64,000 bases of DNA from Calcarisporiella thermophila CBS 279.70 (GCF_041956535.1 NW_027192208.1:211036-275035), one strand, 5' to 3'. Numbered from the stretch's first letter, positions 2,378 to 51,868 are shown. A program made the numbers and translations. The notes: generated by a model from the sequence alone, not told the origin.

Positions 2378-5300
2378 ATGACGAGCTTCGAAAACGATAC
2401 ATACCTTTCTCAGCTCCATCCTCCGGACCTGCATGGGTTACAAGATCTGCTCATGTGCGAGTCTTTTTTTGATGAGTTCACAACCGCCATTCGCCAAGAC
2501 GGGGCCATGGGCGGTGACGACGGGGAAATAAACAACCAGACTACCCCAGCAGAAAGTAGCCCGGATAGAAATTCAAGTTTACCGTCTGAAGATCCTATGT
2601 TGGCCACCGCACAGATATTTCTCGAATTCGATCCAGATAATGAGGTATTCATGTTTCTCCATGGAATCGGTCCAGATAATGTTGTCTAAATTTCTCTTAT
2701 AATAGAAAAAGGAAGCACTTTCTTCCTCTCCTCAGACCTTGTCCGAATCTATCAGTTCTTCACCCGATAACCATCTTATAACCCTTAATTCTCCCGAACA
2801 TGCTACAGACACACTTCATTTTCCTGTCTCACCAGTTTCGCCATCAGCTGCTCCTCATACATTCTCCGCCGATAATACCTTCCAGCAACTCATGTTTGAC
2901 AGCTTGCTTTCGAATCTCACCCTGCCTTCTCCCCCACCTCAACCACTTGAGATGACCTCCCCATCGCCCCATCAGCAAAACGAAACTGCGATACCAGGGG
3001 AGGGCACAGGAAGAGCGACCAAGCGGAAGAAGAATGACGGGCGTGCATCTGGCGTAAATCCAGCGGATGCAAAAACAAAGAAGCGAAAGCAGAAAAGTTC
3101 ACCCTCCAACTCAGCAAAGTCAAGCTCCACCTCCACCGTCAGCAAAAGCAATGCCAAAAAACAAACTGGCGCAAAGAAAAGAGCTTCTCTTACCGACCCG
3201 AATACCGGAGCTCTTGATGTACCAAACCCATCGCTCGGCATCAGTGCGCAGCATGAGTTTGCCCCTGCAATCAACCTCCCCACATCCACCGCTCTCTCCT
3301 CAGCTGGTCAATCCTCTGCAACTGAGCCCATGCTCAAGGCTCTGTTGATGCTAAATAATGGTATATGGCCTGCCCCTTCAGCTGATAGCAACCCAACGTC
3401 CCTCCCTCTTCTCCCCACCCCTACCAATCAAGCCCCCCCACAACCCAACAAAATTGCTATTCCACGCATTCGAAAACCCATCGCCCCGCCTCAACCTCAT
3501 CCTTCATTTACCCCACTCATGAAGCAGCAAAAAAAGGTGGCGCACAACGCAATTGAACGCCGCTATCGCAATAACATCAATGACCGTATCACGGATCTAA
3601 AGAATGCCGTTCCAGCGCTTTGTAATCTTCGTTCAAAAGATTCGGTGGAAGAAATCGATGGAGTGGTAGCAGCCACCAAGCTAAACAAGGCCACCATTCT
3701 TAGAAAAGCCACAGAATATATCCACTATTTGAGGAAAAGCAACGGTGAACTACGAGAAGAGGTGGATATGCTCCGTGGCGCATTGCGAACCCTACCGGGC
3801 GGGAAAGAGCTCTTAGAGAAGTGTTTGGCAGAGATGGAAATGAAAAGGCAGGCAAATATTGCTGCCTCCGCTGCGGCAGGAGAGATGGGCTCGACCGACG
3901 ACGATATCGGCTCGGACGAGGACATCCTCTCCGACCGTGAGTCTGTGTCTCCTTCTCCTTCGAGCATTAGCCCCTCCACCAGCGAGAAATCGGAGAGTGG
4001 ATCCTCGTCCAAATTGCTGCTTGCAGCGTTCCTTTCCGTTACCCTGTTCTATTCGCCCTCGATGATAGGTGAAAAAGGCGGAATTGGATCCGAACACCCT
4101 CATCACCACGACGAGAAGGCAATTGGTGGAGGATCTTACCTGAGTGGAGGCAGTGGGATGGACGTAACTTGGGGATGGTGGTTGGCGAGAGCATGCTTTT
4201 TCCTAGTGTGCCTCTTATATCTATCGCGATACGGGAGCAGTTCATCTTCTACTCGTCGACACCGCCGTCGGACCGAAGAACACCACGCCCATGGCACAAA
4301 ATCTCAAGGAAAGCGGGCACCCAAAATAGCCGGTTTACCCCCGCGACAAGTGTACAGCACATTAATGGACTCTTTACAGATACCCCACTCTACTTCACAA
4401 CAATCATGGCGCCTCGTTCTGGGAATATTTCTGGAAGGCTCTAGATTTCTTTTGCGGCGCTGCTTTTCTGTAGACTTTGCCCCGTGGGAGAAAGAGCCTA
4501 ATGAGGCGGTTGCAGCGGGGCGCTGGCTCCGCATTAGCGAGGCAGAACTCTGCGGAGGCAATCCAAATGTAACACGACTCTCTGTACTATATTCGGCATT
4601 ACGTACTCTAAACCTGGCGGAGCTAGTATCCTCCGATCGAGACCAGATTTCGAGCTCGCTCGCTAGAGTGTATGCCACAGTAGCAATGCAAATAGAAATT
4701 GCCGTCCCGGTTGCGAACCTTGCACGCAGCCTTGCGCAATATTTCTGGCAATCGGCCGTCAATACGTTACCAAAGCAGGCTATGCTCGAGGCTGATGAGG
4801 GCAATCTTGGGCTGAAATGGTTCAAGGGAATCATCTCGGAAGAAACCATGAGGGACGAGCAAGAGGCTGCGCATGAGGGCACGAACGAGAGTAGAAATGA
4901 GTGTGGGAAGAAGGGCTCGGAGGGATTAGTCGGCAGTATTATGTGGGAAGAGGCCCTTTATACGTTTAAGCACACTTCCGGCCTAATTTCTACGCTCGAG
5001 GAGCCTTTGCTGACGCATGATGATGATGATGAGGCCAAGTTGCCCCCATGGAACCGACCCAACAGCTCAACCATCCCCCTTGCTTTGCTTGCCAATCTCC
5101 ACGCCCTGCATAAACTTCGTGGTGTGTACATGAGATTGCTCTCTACGATAGGCTCCACCCCCAAAATTGTTGGCTCAGATGAGGCCGATATGTCCGAGCA
5201 GCATCTGGTTGATGAAGAAAACATGCTCTCCTCGATTATGCACACAACCGATCCATTCTCAACCGCATACTGGTATGCTCTAGTGGCAGCCGCCGTCGAG

Positions 5301-6269
5301 GCCTACCATTTCGGTCATCTCGAAATGGGTGAATCCCTCATTTTACGGCTTAAGGAGATTGAGCCGCGTCACCACCCCCATTGTTCACAGCAGGGTGGGG
5401 CGGAAAAACACAATCCACACGAGAGCATTGCAGGGCTTGAGTGCGCTCATTCAGATATGACTAAGCAGATTATTGCATTCACATTTGTCGGAATAGCATT
5501 GTTGAGGCGGGGGAAGCCACAGGAAGCATTACGAGTGCTGGCGAAGTCAAGAACAGTCGCGGAGCAAAGAAGGAATATAGAGGTCCAGCTTCTTGTGCTT
5601 ACCGGCGAGATAGAGGATGAGATCTCTTTGCTGCAGGATCGACCGGTAGGAGGTGAGATAGATGCGGCGAGGGAAGAGGAGGAGGATCTATTCAACCAGG
5701 ATGCGGATTATGGCGAGGAAAGCGTCGACGATATATTTGCCCCTCGAAAATCCAAATCCAGCACAATGGACGAGCGAAAAGAAGCGTGTAGGGAGAAGAC
5801 ATGCTCCCCTCTGAGAGAGCTAGAGCGCGAGGTGGAGACCATTGCCGATTTTCTCGTGGGCATGTGGGGTTTCGAGGCCTGGATTGATCTATCGCGGGCC
5901 ATGCCCATCTCTCCCTCTGTCGCCTCTCCTTCAGCCACAACCGGATCCTCAGAGGGGCCGACTCTTCCCCCTACCCCGCCCAGTATCTCCCAGCCCGAGT
6001 TCACCAGCATTCTTGCCTCCTATCTTCTCTATCTCCGCCGGCTCATCTCGCATCCTCCCCTCGTTTCCCATAGCACGGTTGGCGAGATGCTTGAACGACT
6101 TTGCCGAGTCAATCGGATAATTCGAGAGGCTGGGGGTGACGGGGCGGATTCCGGTTGTGAGTGTTGCGAGGAAGATAGTGTAGTCGTAGAGCCCGGACGT
6201 CCACACGAGAGTGAGCAAAAATTGCGGAATGTGGAGAGGGCATGGAGGGTGCTTAAGGGAGTTTGCTAA
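2378..6269 (+). CDS. SREBP: SREBP-family membrane-bound bHLH transcription factor, copy A
   Basis: Exon 1 2378-2644 + 61-nt GT-AG intron 2645-2705 joins in frame to ORF ending 6269. bHLH KKVAHNAIERRYRNNINDRI with the SREBP-diagnostic Tyr; two TM segments (LLLAAFLSVTLFYSP; WWLARACFFLVCLLYL); long C-terminal regulatory domain (ALRTLNLAE). Confidence 0.92.
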
Positions 6270-13524: not shown

Positions 13525-16500
13525 TTAGCAAACCCCTTTGAGGATTCGCCATGCTCTTTCTACACTTTTGACCTTCTCTTGCTCGTGATCGGAGGGCTCA
13601 TCATCGCAGCATTCGCAGCCCGAATCCGCCCCATCACCGCCCGCCTCCTTGATGATTCGATTCATCCGGCATAAGCGCTCCAGCACCTCTCCGACAACGC
13701 CGTGCGACATGAGCGGAGGCCGCGACACCAGCCGGCGCAGATAAAGGATATAGGCCGAGAGGATGTCCGCGAAATCTCTGCCCTTCATGGTGTGGGTCGG
13801 GGGTTGCGTTGCGATAGGGCACGACTCGGTCACGCGCCATACGTCAATCCAGGACTCTACGCCGCACAGCCCAACCAAGAAGTCGGCAAGCGTCTCGATC
13901 TCGCGCTCGAGGCGTGCCACGGGATCGATGTAGTAGGACTTCCGGCCGCCAGCTCGGCAGAAAGGCGACGTCTCCACCTCCTCGTCCTTCTCCTCCTCCT
14001 CATCCTCCTCGTCCTCGACGCTCTCAATCGCCCTCACTAGGGCCAATTTGGCGTCCACCTCGCGACGCTGCTCGGCAACCGCTCGCGATTTCGACAGCAC
14101 CCGCACAGCCTCCTGCACCTTCCCCCGCTTGAGCAGCGCCGTGCCCACCAGGGTGAACGCGATGATCTTCTTCGTCATGTCGGAGTATGTGCATGCGAGG
14201 CCCTCGGGGTCCTCGCCCAGACAGCCGCTCTCCTCCTCCTCCAGAATGTGCTGATGACAGTGGGGATGGTGCCTCGGCTCCACCTCCTTTAGCTTCACCA
14301 CAATGGCATCCCCAAGCTCCACGCTGCCGAAATAGTACGCCTCTACAGCAGCGGCAACGAGCGCATACCAATAGGCAGGGGTTGCGGGGTCGGCTCGGGC
14401 GACCACGCGGGATATGACGGGCTCATCGTAGCTGCTGCTCACGGGGTCTCTCTTTTTGTTGGCGGAGTTGGTGAGGGGAGAGGAGATCAGACTCATCAGG
14501 TGCACGTACGCGACGCGGAGATGATGTAGGGCCTGCAGGTTGGAAAGCAGGGCCAGAGGAACCGCCTGGAGGTTGAATACAGAGGAGGGCTCGGAAAAGC
14601 CCAGCTTCTTTTTGGGGCCCGCAGCGTCGCGGCCAAGTCGCACCGCATGGTTGAGGGTGATGAGCGCGTCCCTCCAAACCGCGCTAGTGACCATAGTCTC
14701 CCGCATCCGCTCCATATTGACGCTGCCACAACCATCCGTGGACACCTCTTCATCCTCTTCGTCCCGCTGCTCCGACACGGCTAGCGCGTGCTGCAGCCAC
14801 CTCCCACCCACACTTTCGTCCTGCTCGGTCTGAGCCGTCCTGACCGCCAACTCCCAAAAGTATTTCGGGATCGCTCTCGAGCCCATCATCCCCTTGGGCA
14901 ACGCAATCGCAAACTGGATGGCGGCGGTGACATACACGCGGGCAAGGCTGGAATCGGACGAATACTCCTCGGTTTCGGCAAGCTCCGCCAGATTAAGTGT
15001 GCGCAGGGCTGAGTACAAAATGGAGAGACGCGAGGCCCTGGGGTTGCCTCCGCAGCACTCGGCCTCGCCCATGTGGAGCCAGCGCGCAACCGCAGCCGTC
15101 TCATCCAACTCAGTTTCCCACGGTGCTATGTCGACGCAAATAAGTCGGCGTACAATAAAGCGGAGAGCCTCGGCCACCACTCCAAACACCAGCCGCCAAC
15201 CGCCAGTAGGAAGGGCATGCATGGACTCTGAGAGCGTTCGGTACACTTGCTGAGGCGTTCTCGACTCGGAAACGGATGTGACCATCGAGTGCTGTCGGTT
15301 GCGATCGCTATTCACCCGGCGGGCCCTTGTATCAGCGATATTACCGTCAGTGCGCGAGAAATACACGAGGCATGCGAAGAGGATCGCGGTGCGCACGGCC
15401 CACCAGATCCAAGAGAGATTGAACCAAGCGCTGGCGCCGCCCGTTCCCAGCGGAACACCCCCGAGGGTCTTCTCCTCGGGGTGGTAGTGGCGGTGCTCCC
15501 GACCGCCAAACACGTTGTAGGGCGAATAGAATAAGGACACCGAGAGGAAGACGCCCATCAGTGCCTTGCCAGACTTGCGACCACGACCACGTGACGGAGG
15601 GGGAGGGGACAACGAGTCACGGTCGGAGGACTCGGAGGACGACATAGACCTGTCGCGTCCTTTTCGTTTGGTGCCTGTGGCTTGCTGCTTCTCCTTCTCT
15701 TTTTCAAGCATAAACCTCTGCAGCAGGTCTCCACCGCCAGGCAACAGCTTCACCATTGCCCGTAGGGTGGAGTTTTCCCCCCGCAGCTCCTCGTTGCTCC
15801 TCTTCAGATAGATGATGTACTCGGTCGCCTTTCGTAGAATGGTGGCCTTGTTCAGTTTTGTAGCCGCTACAACCCCATCGATTTCCTCCTCGGAGTCGTG
15901 CTTGGATCGCAGATGACACAGTGCCGGGACCACGTTTTTGAGGTCGGCAATCCGGTCGTTGATGTTGTTGCGGTAGCGGCGTTCGATGGCATTATGCGCC
16001 ACTTTTTTCTGCTTTTTCATTTCCAGCGGTTCGGGCTCGGGTCCAGGGGAAGGCTCAGAGGGGACGGAGTGATTTGCGGTCATGGAGGGTGGCGGGGTGA
16101 CGGAACGGTGGTAGTGCTGCTGCTCACAAGCTGAAGTTGACATCGTGTCCATGTTGAGGAGCCCGCTGTCCCCCCACTGGTCGTTGTTGAGCAGCATTAG
16201 TGCCTTCAGGAACGGCTCGCCGTTGGGTAGGTTTGCCGGGGCAGGGGCCGAGAAAGGAGTCACGGGCGACGAAAGATCCTCACTATTAGGGATTTTGATG
16301 GCGGGGGCAAAGTACGAGCCCTTCGCCATGCTCTCGTCCACCAGCGGCCCAGAATCACTAGGCTTCGCTGGTTGATCCCTGGTCTGTTTTGTTTCCCTGG
16401 TTGGCTGTGTTGGCTGCCGCTGTTTACGTGATTTTCCGGTTGCATCCTCGTTATTCCGGCGGCGTTTCGTGTTCCGCGCATCGGCATCGGTCTGCCCATT

Positions 16501-40047: not shown

Positions 40048-40284
40048 TCAGCTTTTACGAACACAGCACAACTTTAGACACTTTTTGTAAGGAAGACCGG
40101 ATTGTCTACAGTCAAGCATGCAAATCGGAGGATAATAGCAGGTATATGCAGGAGAAGCGCTCTCAGTATCTGCTCCAGTCTGGACGGACGCGTCTTCCAA
40201 CGCTCTTTCCACAGTGGGGGCACCCTGTGAAAGCATGGCGAAGCAAAGAAGAGTAAAAGTAGTGGCGGTGGTAGTAATCTTCAT
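40048..40284 (-). CDS. Secreted prepropeptide, 6-Cys cationic mature peptide
   Basis: Signal MKITTTATTFTLLCFAMLSQG, acidic pro-region, C-terminal C-x5-C-x3-C-x9-C-x3-CC; TATA (tatatata) ~60 nt upstream. Confidence 0.8.
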   Translation of the reverse strand: MKITTTATTFTLLCFAMLSQGAPTVERALEDASVQTGADTESASPAYTCYYPPICMLDCRQSGLPYKKCLKLCCVRKS

Positions 40285-41753: not shown

Positions 41754-42014
41754 ATGAGTTGGATGCCTGCTATTCCTTTCATCCTTATACGTCTTCTAGC
41801 CCTCCATAGTTACAGATATTTTTAGTGCGGTCCGTAGGCCGAAGAGAAGACTTAGGGGAATTTGAAATAGCGAATCCGGTATGCAGCTGGGTACAGTGCT
41901 GTATATTCCATGGGAAATGTGATCGTAGAATGCAAACCAGAAAACCTGCCGGCCTTCCGAGATATGTATTGCATAAATGAGAGATCATGCAGGTCGAGAT
42001 GCCTTCTTACATAA
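41754..42014 (+). pseudogene. Probable decayed paralogue of the 8-Cys peptide at 42822-43085
   Basis: Signal-like MSWMPAIPFILIRLLALHS; two frameshifts recover VCSWVQC...VECKPENLPAFRDMYC...RC with similar Cys spacing; 261 nt vs 264 nt. Confidence 0.5.
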
Positions 42015-42821: not shown

Positions 42822-43085
42822 TTAAGGATAACAATGAGCATCCACCCCACGTCTGTTACAGCACTTCATGAACTTGTCAATATTATCATTAATGCAATCC
42901 CAGTATTTATCATTCCTCTCGTACCACCCGCAAATATTTTCACCACAAATATAGGTTGGCCACTTTCCAGGCAACTTTTTGCTATTGCTACAGAAGCATC
43001 TTAAACGCTCAGCCCCTGCCATTCCGCAGAGTGCAATGGCTACTGACAGGAGGAATATGAACTTAAAAATATTGTACTTGAACAT
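42822..43085 (-). CDS. Small secreted 8-Cys protein (87 aa)
   Basis: ATG 43085; signal MFKYNIFKFIFLLSVAIALCGMAGA; CxC-x14-C-x4-C-x11-C-x10-CC-x8-C; 5'-UTR intron 43093-43164; TATA at 43237-43247. Confidence 0.85.
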   Translation of the reverse strand: MFKYNIFKFIFLLSVAIALCGMAGAERLRCFCSNSKKLPGKWPTYICGENICGWYERNDKYWDCINDNIDKFMKCCNRRGVDAHCYP

Positions 43086-43089
43086 TTTA

Positions 43090-44140
43090 GCCCTAGAACA
43101 ATAATACGAGTGGAGTATTAGTTGTAATAGAGAAAGGCACACTATTTTCAGTTTGTATACATACCAGAATAAGGTGAATAATAAGAGGAGGAGAATTAGG
43201 CGTATTAACGAGTGGCTTCCTTTAAGGAAAATGAGGCCTTTATATAGTCTTTCAGAGGATACAAGTGCCTAGAATCTTAGCGTATTATTAGCCGAATTTC
43301 ATCTCCATTTTGCCATTAGTTAAGCCAAAAAAGGGTACTCAATCTCGATCATTAACGACTCTATAACGCAAGCCCCCGGTGATTTTTCGTAGGCTTCAGC
43401 TTCTCCGGCTCCCGAATCTCAGCTCCTCTATTCTTACTGTTAGACATGGACAAAATCTCGACTAAATAACTCCGCTCAAATACAATTCCTCTCGCCACTA
43501 GCCACCTTTGCTTATGGCGTGTACGAATACACCCCGATATATTAAATCAGGTTCCATGCATTACAAGCATTTCTATACTCGCTCCATACAAAGGGTAACG
43601 GGAGATTGATCGTGACAATGTGTAAAAGAGAAAAGATTGCGCCTCCCGCCTGATTGGTCAAACATAAAATTCTAACTCAACTACCAAAGACATACTCGGC
43701 ACTGTTGATTATCTATATATTTAGTTAGAGTGTTCGTTTAATTTATTGTACCGGATTTTGACTGACTTTCTCAGTTGCTGTATTGCGATCCAGTAAAGTA
43801 AAAGATCAAACGAAGTTTAGCAATGACGTGGCTTCTGCGGAGCTAATATTTGTAATAAAAAAACAAAGAGGCTTAATAATAACGCAGCTGCATATAGATC
43901 CTCCTATATTGGCATGGGAAGCTATGTCATATCTTTGCATTTTGTCAGTACTAGCTCGGAATAAATTTGAAGCAATTTTATTTCCTGTGTTGAGAACTAA
44001 TGGGGGACTGACGTGCTGAGTTGAGTTGGGTCGAAATTTGTCTTCTACGCTAATGTTCGGATCAAAAAAGAGAACTGGTTTGTAAAGAGATTAGATACTG
44101 AAACGAAGGAGCTAAGTTTTTCCATTCCAAATCCATGATA
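43090..44140 (-). promoter_or_regulatory. Promoter/5'-UTR cassette copy 1 (homologous to 45090-46040)
   Basis: Collinear blocks shared with copy 2: cctttatatag, ccaaaaaagggt, tcaatctcgatc, taggcttcagct, cgccactagccacc, cgctccatac. Confidence 0.8.
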
Positions 44141-44705
44141 TTATCGAATATTCCCACGTACCCCCAAAAAATCAACAAAGTAACCGACAATTGACATTTG
44201 TGCCCAGTTCATTCGAAAAAATTTACAACCGTTATATCGATATATGCCTCTACTATTCAAAGATATCACTTTTAAAGTTTCAGCTTTCTATTAGCATACT
44301 ATAAATTATAAATGTAGTCAAGTAGAAGTCAATTTATGAAAATCAGTTTAAACAGAGTTTTTTTAAATATGGTAAAGCTCTAATACTGAGGCTCTCAATA
44401 CAAATCACATCAGGCTGAATAATCTATTATAATGTATATAAGAGAGTGTATATTGGACAATGAAACGGCAAAAATTATTGAAAGATAACCGCTATTTCAG
44501 TGTTAAACCCTTGAAAGTAGGGCGAAATAAGCATCACTCTTGTATACTACACTACGTTTTCCAGCAAATAAGTTCAGATTCACACGTTAGAGATGCTTGC
44601 AAAATCAAGGCTCATTATAAGAATAAACAGATACAATTTGGAATGCATTTTGGTATTATGTAGCTCTTTTATTAATATTATAAATTATATCATTATAGGT
44701 ACTAA

Positions 44706-45089
44706 TTACTTCTTACAGGTGTTAACATCAAGTTCAGTAATACAGCCTTGAATTTTAAAGCTCTTCAAGGTCCTGCCCTTTTTGCTTGTCTCGGGTTTTG
44801 ACCAGCTTCCGTCAGAATGTCCCAAATCATTGTTCCTGCAGAGAGGGTCCGAATGCAAGGTAATAACACAGCGGCTAAAGGGGGTCAAAGTGCAAAACTG
44901 GAACGACCTCACGCCTTTATCCGTAATGCTCTTAGCCAATGCATAGCAGTCGTTCTTGGCAGAGGTTGATTTCCACTCCTGGTACTTTCCAGTGTAATCA
45001 GTTCCTGTATAAACACCCATAAACCATGCGTCTGCAACATTAGACAAAAGTGCCAAGGCACAAAGGAAGATACAAAATGCGAATTTCAT
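44706..45089 (-). CDS. Small secreted protein, beta/gamma-crystallin-like Greek-key pattern (127 aa)
   Basis: ATG 45089; signal MKFAFCIFLCALALLSNVADA; VYTGTDYTG...CYAL...VRSF and ITLHSDPLC...LKSFKI; 6 Cys in mature part; 5'-UTR intron with GTATGT donor at 45175. Confidence 0.85.
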   Translation of the reverse strand: MKFAFCIFLCALALLSNVADAWFMGVYTGTDYTGKYQEWKSTSAKNDCYALAKSITDKGVRSFQFCTLTPFSRCVITLHSDPLCRNNDLGHSDGSWSKPETSKKGRTLKSFKIQGCITELDVNTCKK

Positions 45090-46040
45090 TGTTCTATAGT
45101 GAATTTGAGCCAACTATTGAGATGTACAATTAGATAAGACAGGGGATGGAGCTTTCCATCTTATTTTCTACATACCTAGGTGGTTTGTGTAGATAGTTGA
45201 GGGGAATGATTAGGAGTTCTATTAATTTATGGCGTCCACAAACGAGATCAAGCCCTTTATATAGCCTTTTCAAGGATCCCAGGATTCTTAGCATACCATT
45301 AGCCGTATTTCATTTCTATTTTGCCGTTTAGTTAAACCAAAAAAGGGTGATCAATCTCGATCCTTTCGCAACTCCGCGACACGAGCCCCAGGTGAGTAAT
45401 CCTCGAGCATAGGCTTCAGCTCCTTTGTCTTCCGAAATCTCAGCATTTACTTCTTGAACGCTAAAAATATTTCTCCGCCTTAATTTAAATTCATTCGCCA
45501 CTAGCCACCATTCGACATATTGAGAGTACAATACTTTCCTGTATATTGAACTATCTTCGACCTATTAAAGGCGCAACCATGTCCGCTCCATACGAGAATG
45601 ATTGAGAGATTTAGTGTGACACAATAAAATACCCTCAACAAATTACGCCTCGCGTCTGATTCGCCAACAATGCAATTCCGACTTGACTTCCAAAGATTTG
45701 CTAGCAAAATCTCTGGCGTTTTGAAAATAGTTCATGAAATTTATTGATTGCAATGGGTTTGGACAGACTTTCTAAGCAATTTTTGTGGCACAGTTGAGTA
45801 AACAGTAAAATGAAGCCAGACAATGGAATGGAACCTATGGAGTTAATATCTGTGAGTAAACTACAGACTATATCGCCCTTAACCAAATAAGCCCTAATCG
45901 TATGCAAAATATTGTAAGAGCCAAGAGTCATGGCAAACGTCGAGTTCTACGTTGAAGCTCTAATCAAGGCGTTCAAAAATTTAGATGCAACATAATCATG
46001 ATTAGAAGAACCAAGGTTCTCCATTCAAAATCTGTAATAT
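45090..46040 (-). promoter_or_regulatory. Promoter/5'-UTR cassette copy 2 (homologous to 43090-44140)
   Basis: Same collinear blocks at 45254, 45337, 45351, 45410, 45496; TATA at 45254-45264. Confidence 0.8.
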
Positions 46041-46499
46041 GCAATACGATTGGCACCTATGCATATTCCAAACAAAACAGATGAAATGTGCAGTGGTAAA
46101 TCAATACAGAGTGCTACCAATCTAAATTTTCATTTACGGACCCCCGAACATCAAAAGCTGTATTTCTGTACATTAACATGATATCGGTGATACCAATACA
46201 CCAATGCATATTGTTTTAGTTGTTGTCCCAAAAAGATAAATTTAAAATATTAGCCTCTAAGTATGTGGCCTTCATAGCACATTTCAGGTTCCGCAATTCG
46301 TCCATATTTCTATTGATTACGTCAACGTAACGTAAACTAGCAGATAGATATAAAAGTATTAGTGAGTGGGAAACATTGAAAAAGAAGTTGTATTTTGGAA
46401 TCAAAGTTGAGTGAATTTTACGGCATACATATTCTAGGCTACGTTCCTACATTTATACGTCGCTTAATCTGCCCACCAGTGATATTCCGGCGTTTTTTT

Positions 46500-47345
46500 A
46501 ATATGGTATGAAACGAGAAATAAAAGTGTTTTGATACATTTTGGGATTATTTGGCTCTTTTATGATAAAAATTCATATCATTGCAGAAAATAATCGCTCT
46601 CCTCACGTTTTAACATCAATATCAGTAATGCAAGGCTTGAACTTTTAAAGCACCTCTTGATCCTATATTTTTGTGAATCTCACATTTCCATCATCTTCTA
46701 AGGTCACCTGTGACCGTTCCTGTAGAAAGAATCCAATAACCTTAATGATAATTTCTACTTCTTCTGTGTTCACTTCCAATCACCCAGCAAATGAGACAGC
46801 ATTTCTCGAGCGATCAGTCGGGATCTTCGATCCTCGAACCGTTGTCAAATTTTCCAATCACATTACCAGTATGCACCATTGAATCCTCCTCTGTCTTATT
46901 ACGAATCTCCAAGTTACTATAGACCACCTCTCCCCAAAAAACATCCCATGTAGATTTAGCAAAATGAAATTCAAAGACGAAGATAAAGATAGATATACTC
47001 CTTTCCCAGCAAGGCCTCGCCAGATCCAGCCCTACCAGAAATTCCTTCTTGTCATTAAAATCAATGAGTCATTATCCTAGAAAAATTCATGTAGCATGCC
47101 TTCATTTGCTATTGAATAAAAAGGTAAATATTCCAATCTGCAACATCATGCGGAGCATTCTACTTCCTCTATCCGACTTAAATATTGGCGACACTAGCTC
47201 TAAACTCAAGAAGCGGATTTGATGCAAATTTTTACACTCCATCTACGTGAGGCAATTAGTTATACTTCCAAATCAATACGTTCTTTAACCATTTCCTGTT
47301 GTAGTTTACTCCTCCTTATTTTTAATTCTCTCAGTTTGACATCGG
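46500..47345 (-). pseudogene. Degraded coding-like sequence of unknown family
   Basis: One minus frame reads as protein-like text interrupted by several stops (…LEVNTEEVEIIIKVIGFFLQERSQVTLEDDGNVRFTKI*DQEVL*KF…); no family recognised. Confidence 0.25.
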
Positions 47346-48391
47346 ATAAAATTACGTTTTACACAATCTTTTTGGCATATTTTGAGCTTTTTTTTAATTA
47401 TATTGATAAAGATTAGATAAAAAGTTCTGAGAAGATACATAGGCCAGATATAATAGAGGAAAGAGATTTGGCGAAAAATGTTAGACATAAAATTTAGTTG
47501 AGAGAGCATAGCTTAGTTATATAATATACAAATTAAAGCGTGGCTTACCCACTCATGACTTTTCCATCTAGCAATATTTATATCGTATTCCTTCCACTAA
47601 TTTAAACGTGATTACTCCAGGGACTGCAATTGCATTCCTCAATCTGTTTACTAATGAATTTAGCTGCGCCACTAAACATTTAGATGGTGTGACATTCTAG
47701 AGAATTGTTTGGAAATACCAAGTGAGCATTTGCCGAACATTTAACGAATTAAAAGCTTCCCATTAATATACTAGTTTCTAAAAGTATGTGGTATGTACCA
47801 AATATTAAAGCAATAAAGATGTCGGTTACATCGATTGTCAGAATAAGACTGCCAACGAATGAGTTATTATTTCGATTACAATACATGGTATGACTCTGCT
47901 TAACAAAGTTATTATTAGTGTGGATTTCGGTCGCCACATTATTAATTAAGCTATCTGTACTATCTATTTAATGCAACCATAAACCACAGGCTGAACATAG
48001 CCGAAAAAAAATCTTTGATTTAAGTCTAATTGGATTACATTTCGTTACTAAGCTCAGTGTTTGTGGCTGCTTAGTAAAAGATCACAGTCCTTGCTTCACA
48101 ATGAAGAGGTCGCTCCTTAAATATACGTATGCTGATCCCGGAGATCAAATACAAATTCAACAAAGAAGAAAGAAAACGCGTTTGTAACTAACCACATCAC
48201 CTTGCGGAATAGACCGTCGAAGTCCGCAGTCCATTATATTCTCATTGGCATCAAGCTAAAAGCACTATATAAGCTACGAGATTTTCAATTTACTACTAAA
48301 GATTTTACTCAGTGTCTTTGCTATTTCCAAGCCAATCTCTAAATAGAAGATTACTTTTATATATAGAACCTTTTATTAATTTATACTCAAT

Positions 48392-48706
48392 ATGAAGCTC
48401 TCTGTTTTTGTCGCTCTTATTGCCTCGACTCTCACCATTTCCAGTGCCTGTACTGTTGATATCATCAGAAACGGCAGAGTTGCCTACACCCATGGCAGTG
48501 ATAAATGCCAGTCTGTTGATTCAACCGTTTCCCATGCAGTGTTTCGCAATTGCCCAAAGTGCGCAGCGATTGGATTCCATTGCGCAAATGGAGAGGTATG
48601 GGGTTATGGCCTCGAAAAAGCGGAAAAAGAACTTACTATTGCCCCAGTTCCCAAATCTTGCAAGGTTGTGAAGACTTGTTTCAAGTTGAACGACTGCAGA
48701 AAGTAA
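48392..48706 (+). CDS. Small secreted 8-Cys protein (104 aa), copy 1
   Basis: Signal MKLSVFVALIASTLTISSA; 8 Cys all conserved in copy 2; TATA ctatataag ~48265. Confidence 0.88.
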   Translation: MKLSVFVALIASTLTISSACTVDIIRNGRVAYTHGSDKCQSVDSTVSHAVFRNCPKCAAIGFHCANGEVWGYGLEKAEKELTIAPVPKSCKVVKTCFKLNDCRK

Positions 48707-50278
48707 TTGTAAAGATATGGAGTGTTTTATTTGATTAAGATATATTTTGAAAATATAAATAAATATAATTCAAATCCTCTAACTGGAATTGCATTCGAAA
48801 AAACTAAGTTGCATATTGAACATTTTAATAGAAAGTGAAAAAGATCAAACTATAAATAGTGTTTATAGTGTTTTAAGGGAATAAAATAAAATCGACTGAA
48901 AATAGAGTATATGCAAAGTAAAGTTTTATTTGCATGAGATTGCTTCGGAATAGCGCATCTATATATATAATGAAATGTATTCGTTTTTCTTTGACAGAAA
49001 CTCTTGTTGAACAGCATTATGTACTATATTCAGAGTAGGCTTCTTCGTCAATATTACCCAGTAGGTCCAAATGATCTGGCATATAAGGTCGTGAATTTTT
49101 TAAAGAATAAATAATTCGAATCAAAATTCCGCTGCTTTCGTGCATATATAATTTCCATATACAGAATGCTACAGAAAAAGAAAGTGCTCGGTATTATCTA
49201 ATTTAAGTTAATATTAGTATTATTCTTAACTATTTTTACATACATTTTGACATAAACTAAGACTTTTTCTCTTATCTTAATTACCTAGGCAGAGATTGGT
49301 GGGGTTATACTAAGAAGATATGTAAAAAATTTGATGGAAAAAGATAAACTATGATACTAATATAGCGAATAATGATAGATTCATTGTTCAAATGGGAACT
49401 CATAATTATGTTAAATATTTTACAGGCATGACTTCCCCACTCTTAATACCACTACACCTTAATCTTTCCACCTTGGCAAAAATAGATCGCGCCCCTACCA
49501 TTCATTGAGGTTTAATCAACCTACTGCTATTGCATCATTCAATTCCGTTTAAAGAAATATCAGCTGCGCCACTATTCGTATAAATGGCCTGATATTTAAG
49601 AATACTTTTGGGAAATATCAAGAGAAACCTACGTATTAAACTAATTAATTAAAATTTTCCCAATAGTATACTAGCTCCTACTTAAAACATGTGGTACATA
49701 CTAATATGGAATAAATAAAGTAAAGGTATCGGTGTCAGCGATTGTCAGAATAAGAAGATGTATGGTTGTCGTGGTTACAATTCACAGTATGATTATGCCT
49801 AGCGTAACAATTATTAGCGTGAATTTCAGTCGCTGCGCTGCAAATTAGGCTATCTATTTAATGCACTCATAAACCACCGGCCGATATAGCCGAAAAAAAA
49901 TGCTTGATTCAAGTCTGATTGGATTACTTTTTGGTTCTTAGCTTAGTTTTTGTGATAGCTTAGTAGAAGTGTGTGGTTCTTGCCTCACGATGAAGAGGTC
50001 GCTCCTTAAAATATATGTGCTGACCCCTAAGTTTAAACGTAAATATAACAAAAACAGAAAGAAATCACGTTTGTGATCAACCACATCACCTTGCGGAATA
50101 GACAGCCATAGTCAGCAGTCCAGTTTATTCCCATAGGCACATAGCTAAAATCACTATAAATGTTATGAAATTTTTGACTTGCTACCAAAGTTTTTACTCA
50201 GTGTCTTTGCTATTTCCTAGTCAATCTCTAGTTAGAGATTATCTTTGTATATAGAATCTTAGTTGATTATTACTCAAT

Positions 50279-50594
50279 ATGAAGCTCTCTTGTTTTTGTC
50301 GCTCTTATTGCCTCGACTCTCACCATTTCCAGTGCCTGTACTGTTGATATCATCAGAAACGGCAGAGTTGCCTACACCCATGGCAGTGATAAATGCCAGT
50401 CTGTTGATTCAACCGTTTCCCATGCAGTGTTTCGCAATTGCCCGAAGTGCGCAGCAATTGCATTCAAGTGCGCAGATGGAGGGCAATATGGATATCGTCT
50501 CGAAAAAGCGGAAAAGGAACTTGGTCTTGCCCCAGTTCCTAAATCTTGTAAAGTTGTGAAGACTTGTTTCATTTTGAACGAATGTAAAAAGTAA
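50279..50594 (+). pseudogene. Small secreted 8-Cys protein copy 2 with +1 frameshift (pseudogene or sequencing indel)
   Basis: atgaagctctctTgttttt vs atgaagctctctgttttt in copy 1; removing one T gives an intact 104-aa ORF ending TAA 50592-50594. Confidence 0.8.
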
Positions 50595-51868
50595 AATTAC
50601 ATCAAAATTTTGGAATGTATGTCATCTGGTTAAATAGTTTGAAAATAAAATCATTTACAAAAATTTATTCTTATTCATCAAGGATAAAAAGGTTTGAAAA
50701 TGCTGACTTAGGTGAAAATTCGTATTAAAGGTGAGAGTTTGTATCCACACGCAGTTTACAGAGGAGTATCTATATGATATATTTGTATATGCAAAACCTC
50801 AAATATATTTTATGATGCTCACTGCAAAGAGCTGTCACTAATATAATATCTGTATATTTAGATTTAAGCATTTCCGAAATAAATTAACATTTCAGTTGAA
50901 GAGTTAGTAACGAGTATACTGTATACGAATAATAGTAGTTTATGTTTTTCAAATATTTAATTGTTTTATATGGGGGTTGTTCGTAAATGTAGAGGTAAAT
51001 GTAATAATAAAAGGCATCCCGAAACTTTTCTGAGATATTTTATGATTATTTTATGTTTTATCGAATGAAATAAACCATGACATATAAAGACACGCTATCA
51101 TATATGGCCAAATTGCAAATAATCCAAACTAAATTTAAAGAACCTAAAATGTTGGGTGAATTGATCAATCCATCTCTTGGCTGTATAGAATTTATTAAAC
51201 TAATGTTAATTATATATAATTTTCTCAAAAAAAAAAAGACTAAATAAAGCCCTGCGTAGAGAATCGTGCACGACAAATTGCCTCATAGGTATTAAGGATT
51301 CCGCAAGAGATATGTTAATGTTAATCATGACTATTATCACAACCATTCATGCTAGTAAGTTAATCTTATGTCAATATGAACATACCATTTGTAGTGTTTT
51401 GACATACATTTCTCTATATCTGGTGTTGGAGATGTAGAGTTTATCAGGAAGAATTAAGTCTGTTCTTATTTTTACACATTTTAATCGTATGCAGATATAT
51501 ATATGAGCAGTATGAATTGGCCTGTATCCACCTGCCTTAGTCCTCGAAAATTCATGCAACCACCTCCGAAATACATGCAATCAATTTGCAGCTCAATTTT
51601 AGTTTCTAAAAGTATGGCGCAGAAACGATTTCATTTCGACTGCAGCACAAAGGCGGCTTAGCATCGAATCTGATTCCCTTTTTAACACCTATTTCTGAGC
51701 GGAAGGACCTCTCTTCTTATCCTTTATTCTTCTTTTCATCCAACCATCCATCCATCTTTCTTGTATTGAAAACCTATTCAATCCAAGCAGAAAAGAATCA
51801 TAAGCAAAATCAGCGCATCTCTTATTCTATCTGTATCAGAGGTTTAGAAGCAAGTAGCATTATCTTTT

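Follow-up and report, generated by a model that had tools for sequence, protein, structure and literature searches.

Two neighbouring genes for unrelated small secreted peptides, A and B, were found behind two copies of the same upstream DNA in Calcarisporiella thermophila, a thermophilic early-diverging soil fungus of the Mucoromycota. Taken as a whole, the explanation which we favour, with fair but not high confidence, is that a tandem duplication rewired an ancestral pair made of a crystallin-like gene and a KP6-fold gene, and that the two peptides would now be deployed jointly. The stretch of DNA that was analysed (64,000 nucleotides, here called the window) corresponds to C18:211036-275035 of the 28 Mb assembly. 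Both coding sequences are single-exon and lie in an AT-rich island (34-41% GC, approximately 39.5 to 53 kb) which holds several small secreted-protein genes and is flanked by an SPT2 gene and by a gene which, judged by eye, ends in an SH3-like domain. The homology between B and a decayed remnant (C) had been missed earlier, and the adjacency of the closest relatives of A and B in a second organism is a new result. The coordinates of all features are given in Table 1.

Table 1. Features of the A/B region, in window positions
Feature	Positions	Strand	Description
Gene A CDS	42822..43085	-	87 aa; predicted signal 1-25; mature 62 aa, 8 Cys; predicted KP6 fold
Predicted 5'-UTR intron of A	43093..43164	-	72 nt; GTATGT donor, CTAAT branch, TAG acceptor; ends 7 nt before ATG
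Promoter copy before A	43165..43866	-	TATA box 43246-43239 and 5'-UTR exon; putative original
Isolated spacer anchor, downstream copy	44109..44142	-	25/33 identical to partner 46008-46041; offset 1899; z ~3, marginal
3' third of B CDS and 3' UTR	44618..44851	-	homologous to remnant C, offset 1888; nhmmer E 5.6e-15
Gene B CDS	44706..45089	-	127 aa; signal 1-21; mature 106 aa, 6 Cys; candidate of WmKT/SKLP/MiAMP1 type
Predicted 5'-UTR intron of B	45114..45175	-	62 nt; alternative acceptor 45096-45094 gives 82 nt
Promoter copy before B	45177..45866	-	TATA box 45263-45256; putative captured copy
Isolated spacer anchor, upstream copy	46008..46041	-	match to 44109-44142
Remnant C	46507..46735	-	decayed 3' end and 3' UTR of a B-type gene; stops and frameshifts; 5' two-thirds unrecognisable

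The DNA upstream of A and B was homologous over a continuous block of approximately 0.7 kb, from 43866/45866 down to the intron donors at 43164/45175. Alignment of the block before A with that before B gave 453 identical columns out of 663 (68%). Compared with shuffled sequences, the promoter segments produced z scores of 9-16, the TATA-to-donor segment 4.4 and the intron 2.3, and the proximal 200 bp of the block produced an E value of 7e-27 with blastn. All six anchor matches of the original prediction were recovered at the same positions. The collinear homology which it had described is real, but its length of about 0.9 kb was too long: the outermost anchor at 44121/46020 is present, but as a lone 33 bp match of marginal z score (~3) with an offset of 1899 and not 2000-2017, and the DNA between this anchor and the continuous block was at background level (z 0.5). 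Matches within the promoter alignment were no more clustered than by chance (p 0.11-0.43), identical stretches were no longer than expected at 68% identity, and selected motif blocks were rejected as a candidate. Homology of the 27 nt that follow the intron was also rejected (p 0.095).

Copy number was determined by a pattern search allowing three mismatches; a whole-genome DNA search with each copy was insensitive and missed the sister copy. Two diagnostic patterns matched just two sites in the 28 Mb genome, one before A and one before B. A profile of both promoter copies produced no further match in the window or in approximately 170 kb of paralogue regions, which were partly masked. In addition, the block was absent from the eight A paralogues, the four B paralogues and the other secreted genes examined.

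Both genes showed a predicted intron with a GTATGT donor, a CTAAT branch and an AG acceptor just before the ATG, in agreement with the original prediction. A distant TATA box combined with a predicted 5'-UTR intron was found in four of the nine A-family genes under strict rules and in six of the nine when canonical donors were counted; three of the A paralogues that carry the intron are recent duplicates of each other. The layout was absent from ten other secreted genes and from the four B paralogues, in which the TATA box lies 59-85 nt from the ATG.

The AF2 model of A was confident, with a pLDDT of 92 and a pTM of 0.77. Its three best structural matches were 1kp6 (Z 7.1), 4gvb_B (Z 6.4) and 6qpk (Z 6.0), corresponding to KP6 alpha, KP6 beta and Zt-KP6-1. 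These Z scores of 6-7 are modest, yet they are above those of unrelated entries (5.1 and lower), and Foldseek gave the same family order with KP6 first. The modelled chain forms an alpha/beta sandwich of two helices on a four-stranded sheet, as in KP6 alpha and beta. Compared with KP6 of the Ustilago maydis virus and with Zt-KP6-1, A would share the fold over approximately 60 residues at 12-20% identity. However, A is not a KP6 toxin proper: it is a single domain of 62 aa, with neither a precursor that is split into alpha and beta subunits nor a Kex2 linker, and its neighbour has another predicted fold. A is small, disulfide-rich and of secreted type, with a hydrophobic N-terminus, its signal being judged from the sequence. 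No Pfam match was found for A or for its relatives. The A family has nine members in the genome (A and eight paralogues) and approximately 30 representatives outside it, in Mucorales, Mortierella, Basidiobolus, an agaric, an ascomycete and Physarum. A possible pseudo-paralogue of A at 41754-42014 was rejected. The member from Physarum polycephalum (P0008) comes from a slime-mould transcriptome and, together with the members from early-diverging fungi, lies beyond the Dikarya range stressed in PMC12382754.

B is probably a beta/gamma-crystallin-like protein, as judged from its Atlas model (pTM 0.73). This model showed TM scores of 0.51-0.60 to Crystall/Inhibitor_I36 clusters, and feature matches were 0.85 for MiAMP1 and 0.84 for Crystall. 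The AF2 model of B produced in this analysis was poor (pLDDT 44) and the fold search with it was uninformative. B resembles WmKT, Streptomyces SKLP and MiAMP1 in being of secreted type, in its length of approximately 106 aa and in its Atlas neighbours (Crystall, Inhibitor_I36 and MiAMP1 clusters), but it has no Pfam or PDB sequence match, and its putative crystallin fold is that of the Atlas model. The B family has five members in the genome (B and four paralogues), with relatives in Aspergillus, Pleosporales and Ilyonectria. One B paralogue, L009:1453-1860 (C21), has a GC3 of 68% and grouped with Aspergillus and Pleosporales proteins and not with B; a separate horizontal transfer of this gene is possible.

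The mature products of A and B had been described as unalignable, and this was borne out. Their mature regions gave no alignment at the DNA level (z -0.1), and hhalign of the two family profiles gave a probability of 8%, over the signal peptide only. The models also differ, with an alpha/beta KP6 fold for A and a predicted all-beta mature chain for B, and no common fold was found; both mature peptides are cationic. Given that the two profiles match in the signal peptide alone and that the mature DNA cannot be aligned, A and B are judged never to have been paralogues. The pattern of conserved non-coding and unconserved coding DNA, which had been read as the reverse of normal paralogue decay, is that of two genes from different families. 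A weak likeness of the signal peptides does exist as noted originally, but it is generic: as DNA, the A/B pair ranks 108th among 276 signal-peptide pairs, and a signal peptide common to A and B was rejected on this rank. The signal of B matched that of its outside relative P0046 (see below). By these comparisons the signal peptide is outside the shared unit and B's signal is its own, not taken from A.

The earlier-missed homology links the 3' end of B with remnant C (46735-46507), which lies 1.89 kb upstream of that end. It covers the last approximately 48 codons of B and its 3' UTR, with identities of 70% and 78% (z 9.7 and 7.3). For the 5' two-thirds of C, homology to B was not detected (z 1.4-1.6; N-half profile score 13.6 against a null of 16.9), and similarity in the spacer was close to background or at it. 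Three homologies are thus collinear with a drifting offset of 1888 for B/C, 1899 for the anchor and 2000-2017 for the promoter, and the minus-strand order of C, anchor and B's promoter copy maps onto B's 3' end, anchor and A's promoter copy. Divergence was also alike, with 67-77% identity per segment between the promoter copies and 70-78% between B and C. Since C, the anchor and the promoter copies are collinear, one direct duplication of approximately 2 kb is suggested, and because the B/C match is collinear with the promoter match, local duplication would explain the shared promoter. A collinear direct duplicate over the 3' part of an upstream gene and the 5' region of a downstream gene is a hallmark of promoter capture by tandem duplication, and such a duplicate was observed here. 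The promoter capture mentioned in the original prediction is in line with these results, with two unrelated predicted folds behind homologous upstream DNA.

In the proposed sequence of events, a crystallin-like gene and the KP6-fold gene A would already have been neighbours in the same orientation in the ancestor. One old local duplication of approximately 1.9-2.0 kb would then have copied the crystallin coding sequence, its 3' UTR, the spacer, and the promoter and 5'-UTR intron of A. With the junction in the intron or 5' UTR just before the ATG of B, the new crystallin copy B would have come under the copy of A's promoter, while the original crystallin copy C, now redundant, would have decayed. 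The outcome would be two secreted peptides, unrelated to each other, both cationic and rich in disulfides, which would probably be expressed in the same pattern. The direction from A to B is proposed because the UTR-intron layout occurs in the family of A and not in that of B. Overall, a single duplication event in this direction, in which B captured A's promoter, appears likely, and B most likely took the promoter and intron of A only and not its signal. Of the parent genes, A is intact and the crystallin original C is recognisable in its 3' third only; the loss of its 5' two-thirds requires a second event, either deletion or replacement. Upstream of C, at 46736-47010 (minus strand), a signal-peptide-like stretch lies near the expected offset and ranks 14th of 276, without significant homology to B.

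Rearrangement of regulatory elements by tandem duplication, with altered expression as a result, is documented (PMC5460883). The chimeric genes of Drosophila yakuba described there resemble the A/B case in that a partial tandem duplication joins 5' regulatory DNA to the coding sequence of a neighbour. They differ from it in that the A/B junction would lie before the ATG, the protein is not chimeric and the event is old. The A/B region would be a readable example of a local duplication that rewires the expression of a fungal secreted peptide.

The closest relative of A among 1.84 billion representatives was P0011 (52% identity; 87 bits, with the second-best match at 27), and the best-scoring relative of B was P0046 (45% identity; 82.5 bits, with the second-best match at 70). 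The P0046 gene lies 92 nt upstream of the P0011 gene on the same strand, which is the order and orientation seen in the window. Three samples (SRR32745548/50/51) contained this pair, on short Logan contigs with a GC content of 16-19%. Neither identity is exceeded by the Calcarisporiella paralogues, which show 23-35% to A and 22-40% to B. GC3 was approximately 12% in the AT-rich contigs against 48-51% for A and B, which indicates a very different genome, and the A-B spacing is approximately 20-fold larger in Calcarisporiella. Tree support for A with P0011 was 96/76, and the grouping of B with P0046 was not resolved in the tree. No partner gene was found nearby at eight other B-family loci (three of them on contigs shorter than 5 kb), at two Mucorales A-family loci or at the same-genome paralogues. 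In addition, no relatives of A or B were found in the viral contigs and prokaryotic genomes searched, and the JGI metagenomes contained no A relative and two B relatives without a partner. Across the loci covered, the pairing is specific to the A/B subfamily and is known from one outside organism. A and B look like a conserved pair, a fixed team rather than swappable cargo.

The 10-mer AAATTGAATT occurs exactly twice in the 1748-nt contig: at L047:125-134, 33 nt before the ATG of the B-like gene, and at L047:617-626, 32 nt before that of the A-like gene. It is possibly a common promoter motif of the two genes, and its two occurrences could be due to chance in such AT-rich DNA. The motif may be reminiscent of those in the early promoters of giant viruses and of linear plasmids of the cytoplasm. 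A bolder reading, which we consider rather unlikely, is that A and B form a hitherto undescribed two-component antimicrobial module of a KP6 and a crystallin fold. Such a module would be exchanged either among distantly related eukaryotes or between a fungus and an AT-rich element, cytoplasmic or viral, and would be selected for co-expression. If so, the AT-rich organism would achieve co-expression through the 92-nt spacing and AAATTGAATT, and Calcarisporiella through copying of a whole promoter.

In Zymoseptoria, proteins with the KP6 fold are inhibitors of fungal growth (PMC12382754). AvrLm10A and SIX5, which have the same fold and belong to KP6 structural group 1 (PMC12382754), act together with unrelated neighbours that are co-regulated with them (PMC10346447). 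On these two precedents, A and B are suggested to be an antimicrobial pair that is deployed jointly. The duplicated promoter makes co-expression of A and B reasonably probable, and an antimicrobial role, as antifungal or antimicrobial weapons of a saprotroph, is by analogy about equally probable. Physical or functional cooperation between the two may occur, but on the same analogy we would put it somewhat below even chances. As in AvrLm10A/AvrLm10B and SIX5/AVR2, a KP6-fold gene stands beside an unrelated secreted gene in an AT-rich region and the adjacency is kept across species. However, the known pairs are divergently transcribed, whereas A and B are head-to-tail in both organisms, with duplicated promoters in the window, and their co-regulation is proposed to come from promoter copying instead of a bidirectional promoter. 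Furthermore, the known pairs belong to plant-pathogenic ascomycetes and their co-expression and binding were shown, while A and B, with their crystallin-like partner, belong to a saprotrophic member of the Mucoromycota and are known from sequence and models. A and B represent a concrete candidate pair of unrelated toxin folds which may act together. If a cooperating KP6 pair in a saprotrophic early-diverging fungus is true, such cooperation would seem to be older and to have begun in microbial competition.

The strongest competing explanation accepts the duplication and the capture but takes them as a neutral accident, with A and B not cooperating and the AT-rich adjacency being the hitch-hiking of one transferred or inherited fragment. 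The absence of motif-level selection in the promoter alignment agrees with it, as do the many members of the A and B families that stand alone (most of them) and an island full of duplications and broken copies. Against this, both ORFs are intact in both organisms despite approximately 50% protein divergence, the difference in GC3 and the 20-fold difference in spacing, and the captured copy B survived while the original C decayed. We regard the accident as a serious but minority alternative, roughly one case in three at most in our judgement.

The same local duplication could also have started from a promoter native to the crystallin gene, so that an array of promoter and crystallin gene was formed and a later deletion put A under the last copy. 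Collinear offsets would result from this as well, and if the pair arrived in the compact form seen in L047, A would have needed a promoter. It requires, however, that two duplications and one deletion took place and that the first promoter was lost; upstream of C no trace of a promoter was found (z at most 2.2), and the UTR-intron layout is that of the A family. A crystallin-native promoter is therefore improbable compared with capture from A.

The original prediction had favoured an expression and secretion cassette with exchangeable payloads, that is, a reusable unit of promoter, intron and signal whose payloads are swapped by a dedicated process. A parallel for such a unit may be seen in a block of 150 bp which precedes an SH3b gene and is duplicated 1282 bp away. 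The A/B block, by the pattern search, exists as two adjacent copies in the whole genome, is absent before the paralogues and the other secreted genes examined, and has no terminal repeats. The secretion part of the proposal failed with the signal peptide, which is not common to A and B, and the payload part with the second organism, in which the same two subfamilies are neighbours, so that the payloads are not arbitrary. The cassette is thus very improbable. The mimp-associated SIX promoters of Fusarium oxysporum (PMC3599309) are similar to the A/B case in having common upstream DNA before unrelated secreted genes, but mimp is a dispersed MITE and the A/B block a local duplicate.

Least probable of all, to the point of being negligible, is that A and B are extremely diverged paralogues or that the upstream block represents a transposon, an RNA gene or former coding DNA: the tandem arrangement with common upstream DNA does look paralogue-like, but the two families are separate, each with its own paralogues and outside relatives and with different predicted folds, and the block was rejected as a transposon or MITE (not dispersed, terminal repeats absent), as an RNA gene (no Rfam match) and as old coding sequence (5 of 20 indels in multiples of three).

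Other features were observed in the window and in the genome. A second tandem duplication in the island is located at 47466-48759 and 49350-50651 (plus strand). It carries a 104 aa secreted gene with eight Cys at 48392-48706; in the copy at 50279-50594, one nucleotide is inserted in the early part of the sequence that codes for the signal. The offset of this duplication, 1888-1890, equals that of B/C; the ages of the two differ and the equality is probably a coincidence. The 8-mer CGCCACTA was found at 43493, 45496, 47667 and 49567, upstream of all four duplicated units, which have two independent origins; it occurs four more times in the window. At 40048-40284 (minus strand) a secreted prepropeptide of 78 aa is encoded, which has a short C-terminus rich in Cys and no Pfam match, and a similar gene is present at C16:391-606. 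The product of the SH3b gene (L044:1408-1710, C25:84.6 kb), a secreted protein of 100 aa, has an SH3b domain of bacterial type; the gene is intronless and neighbours a hydrophobin gene (C25:89.1 kb). The second copy of the 150 bp block upstream of the SH3b gene lies downstream and not before the hydrophobin, and no gene was seen behind it. Finally, 3519-6175 and 13598-16020 form an inverted paralogous pair, the first of which is a 1176 aa ORF that resembles, by eye, an SREBP-type bHLH membrane-bound transcription factor.
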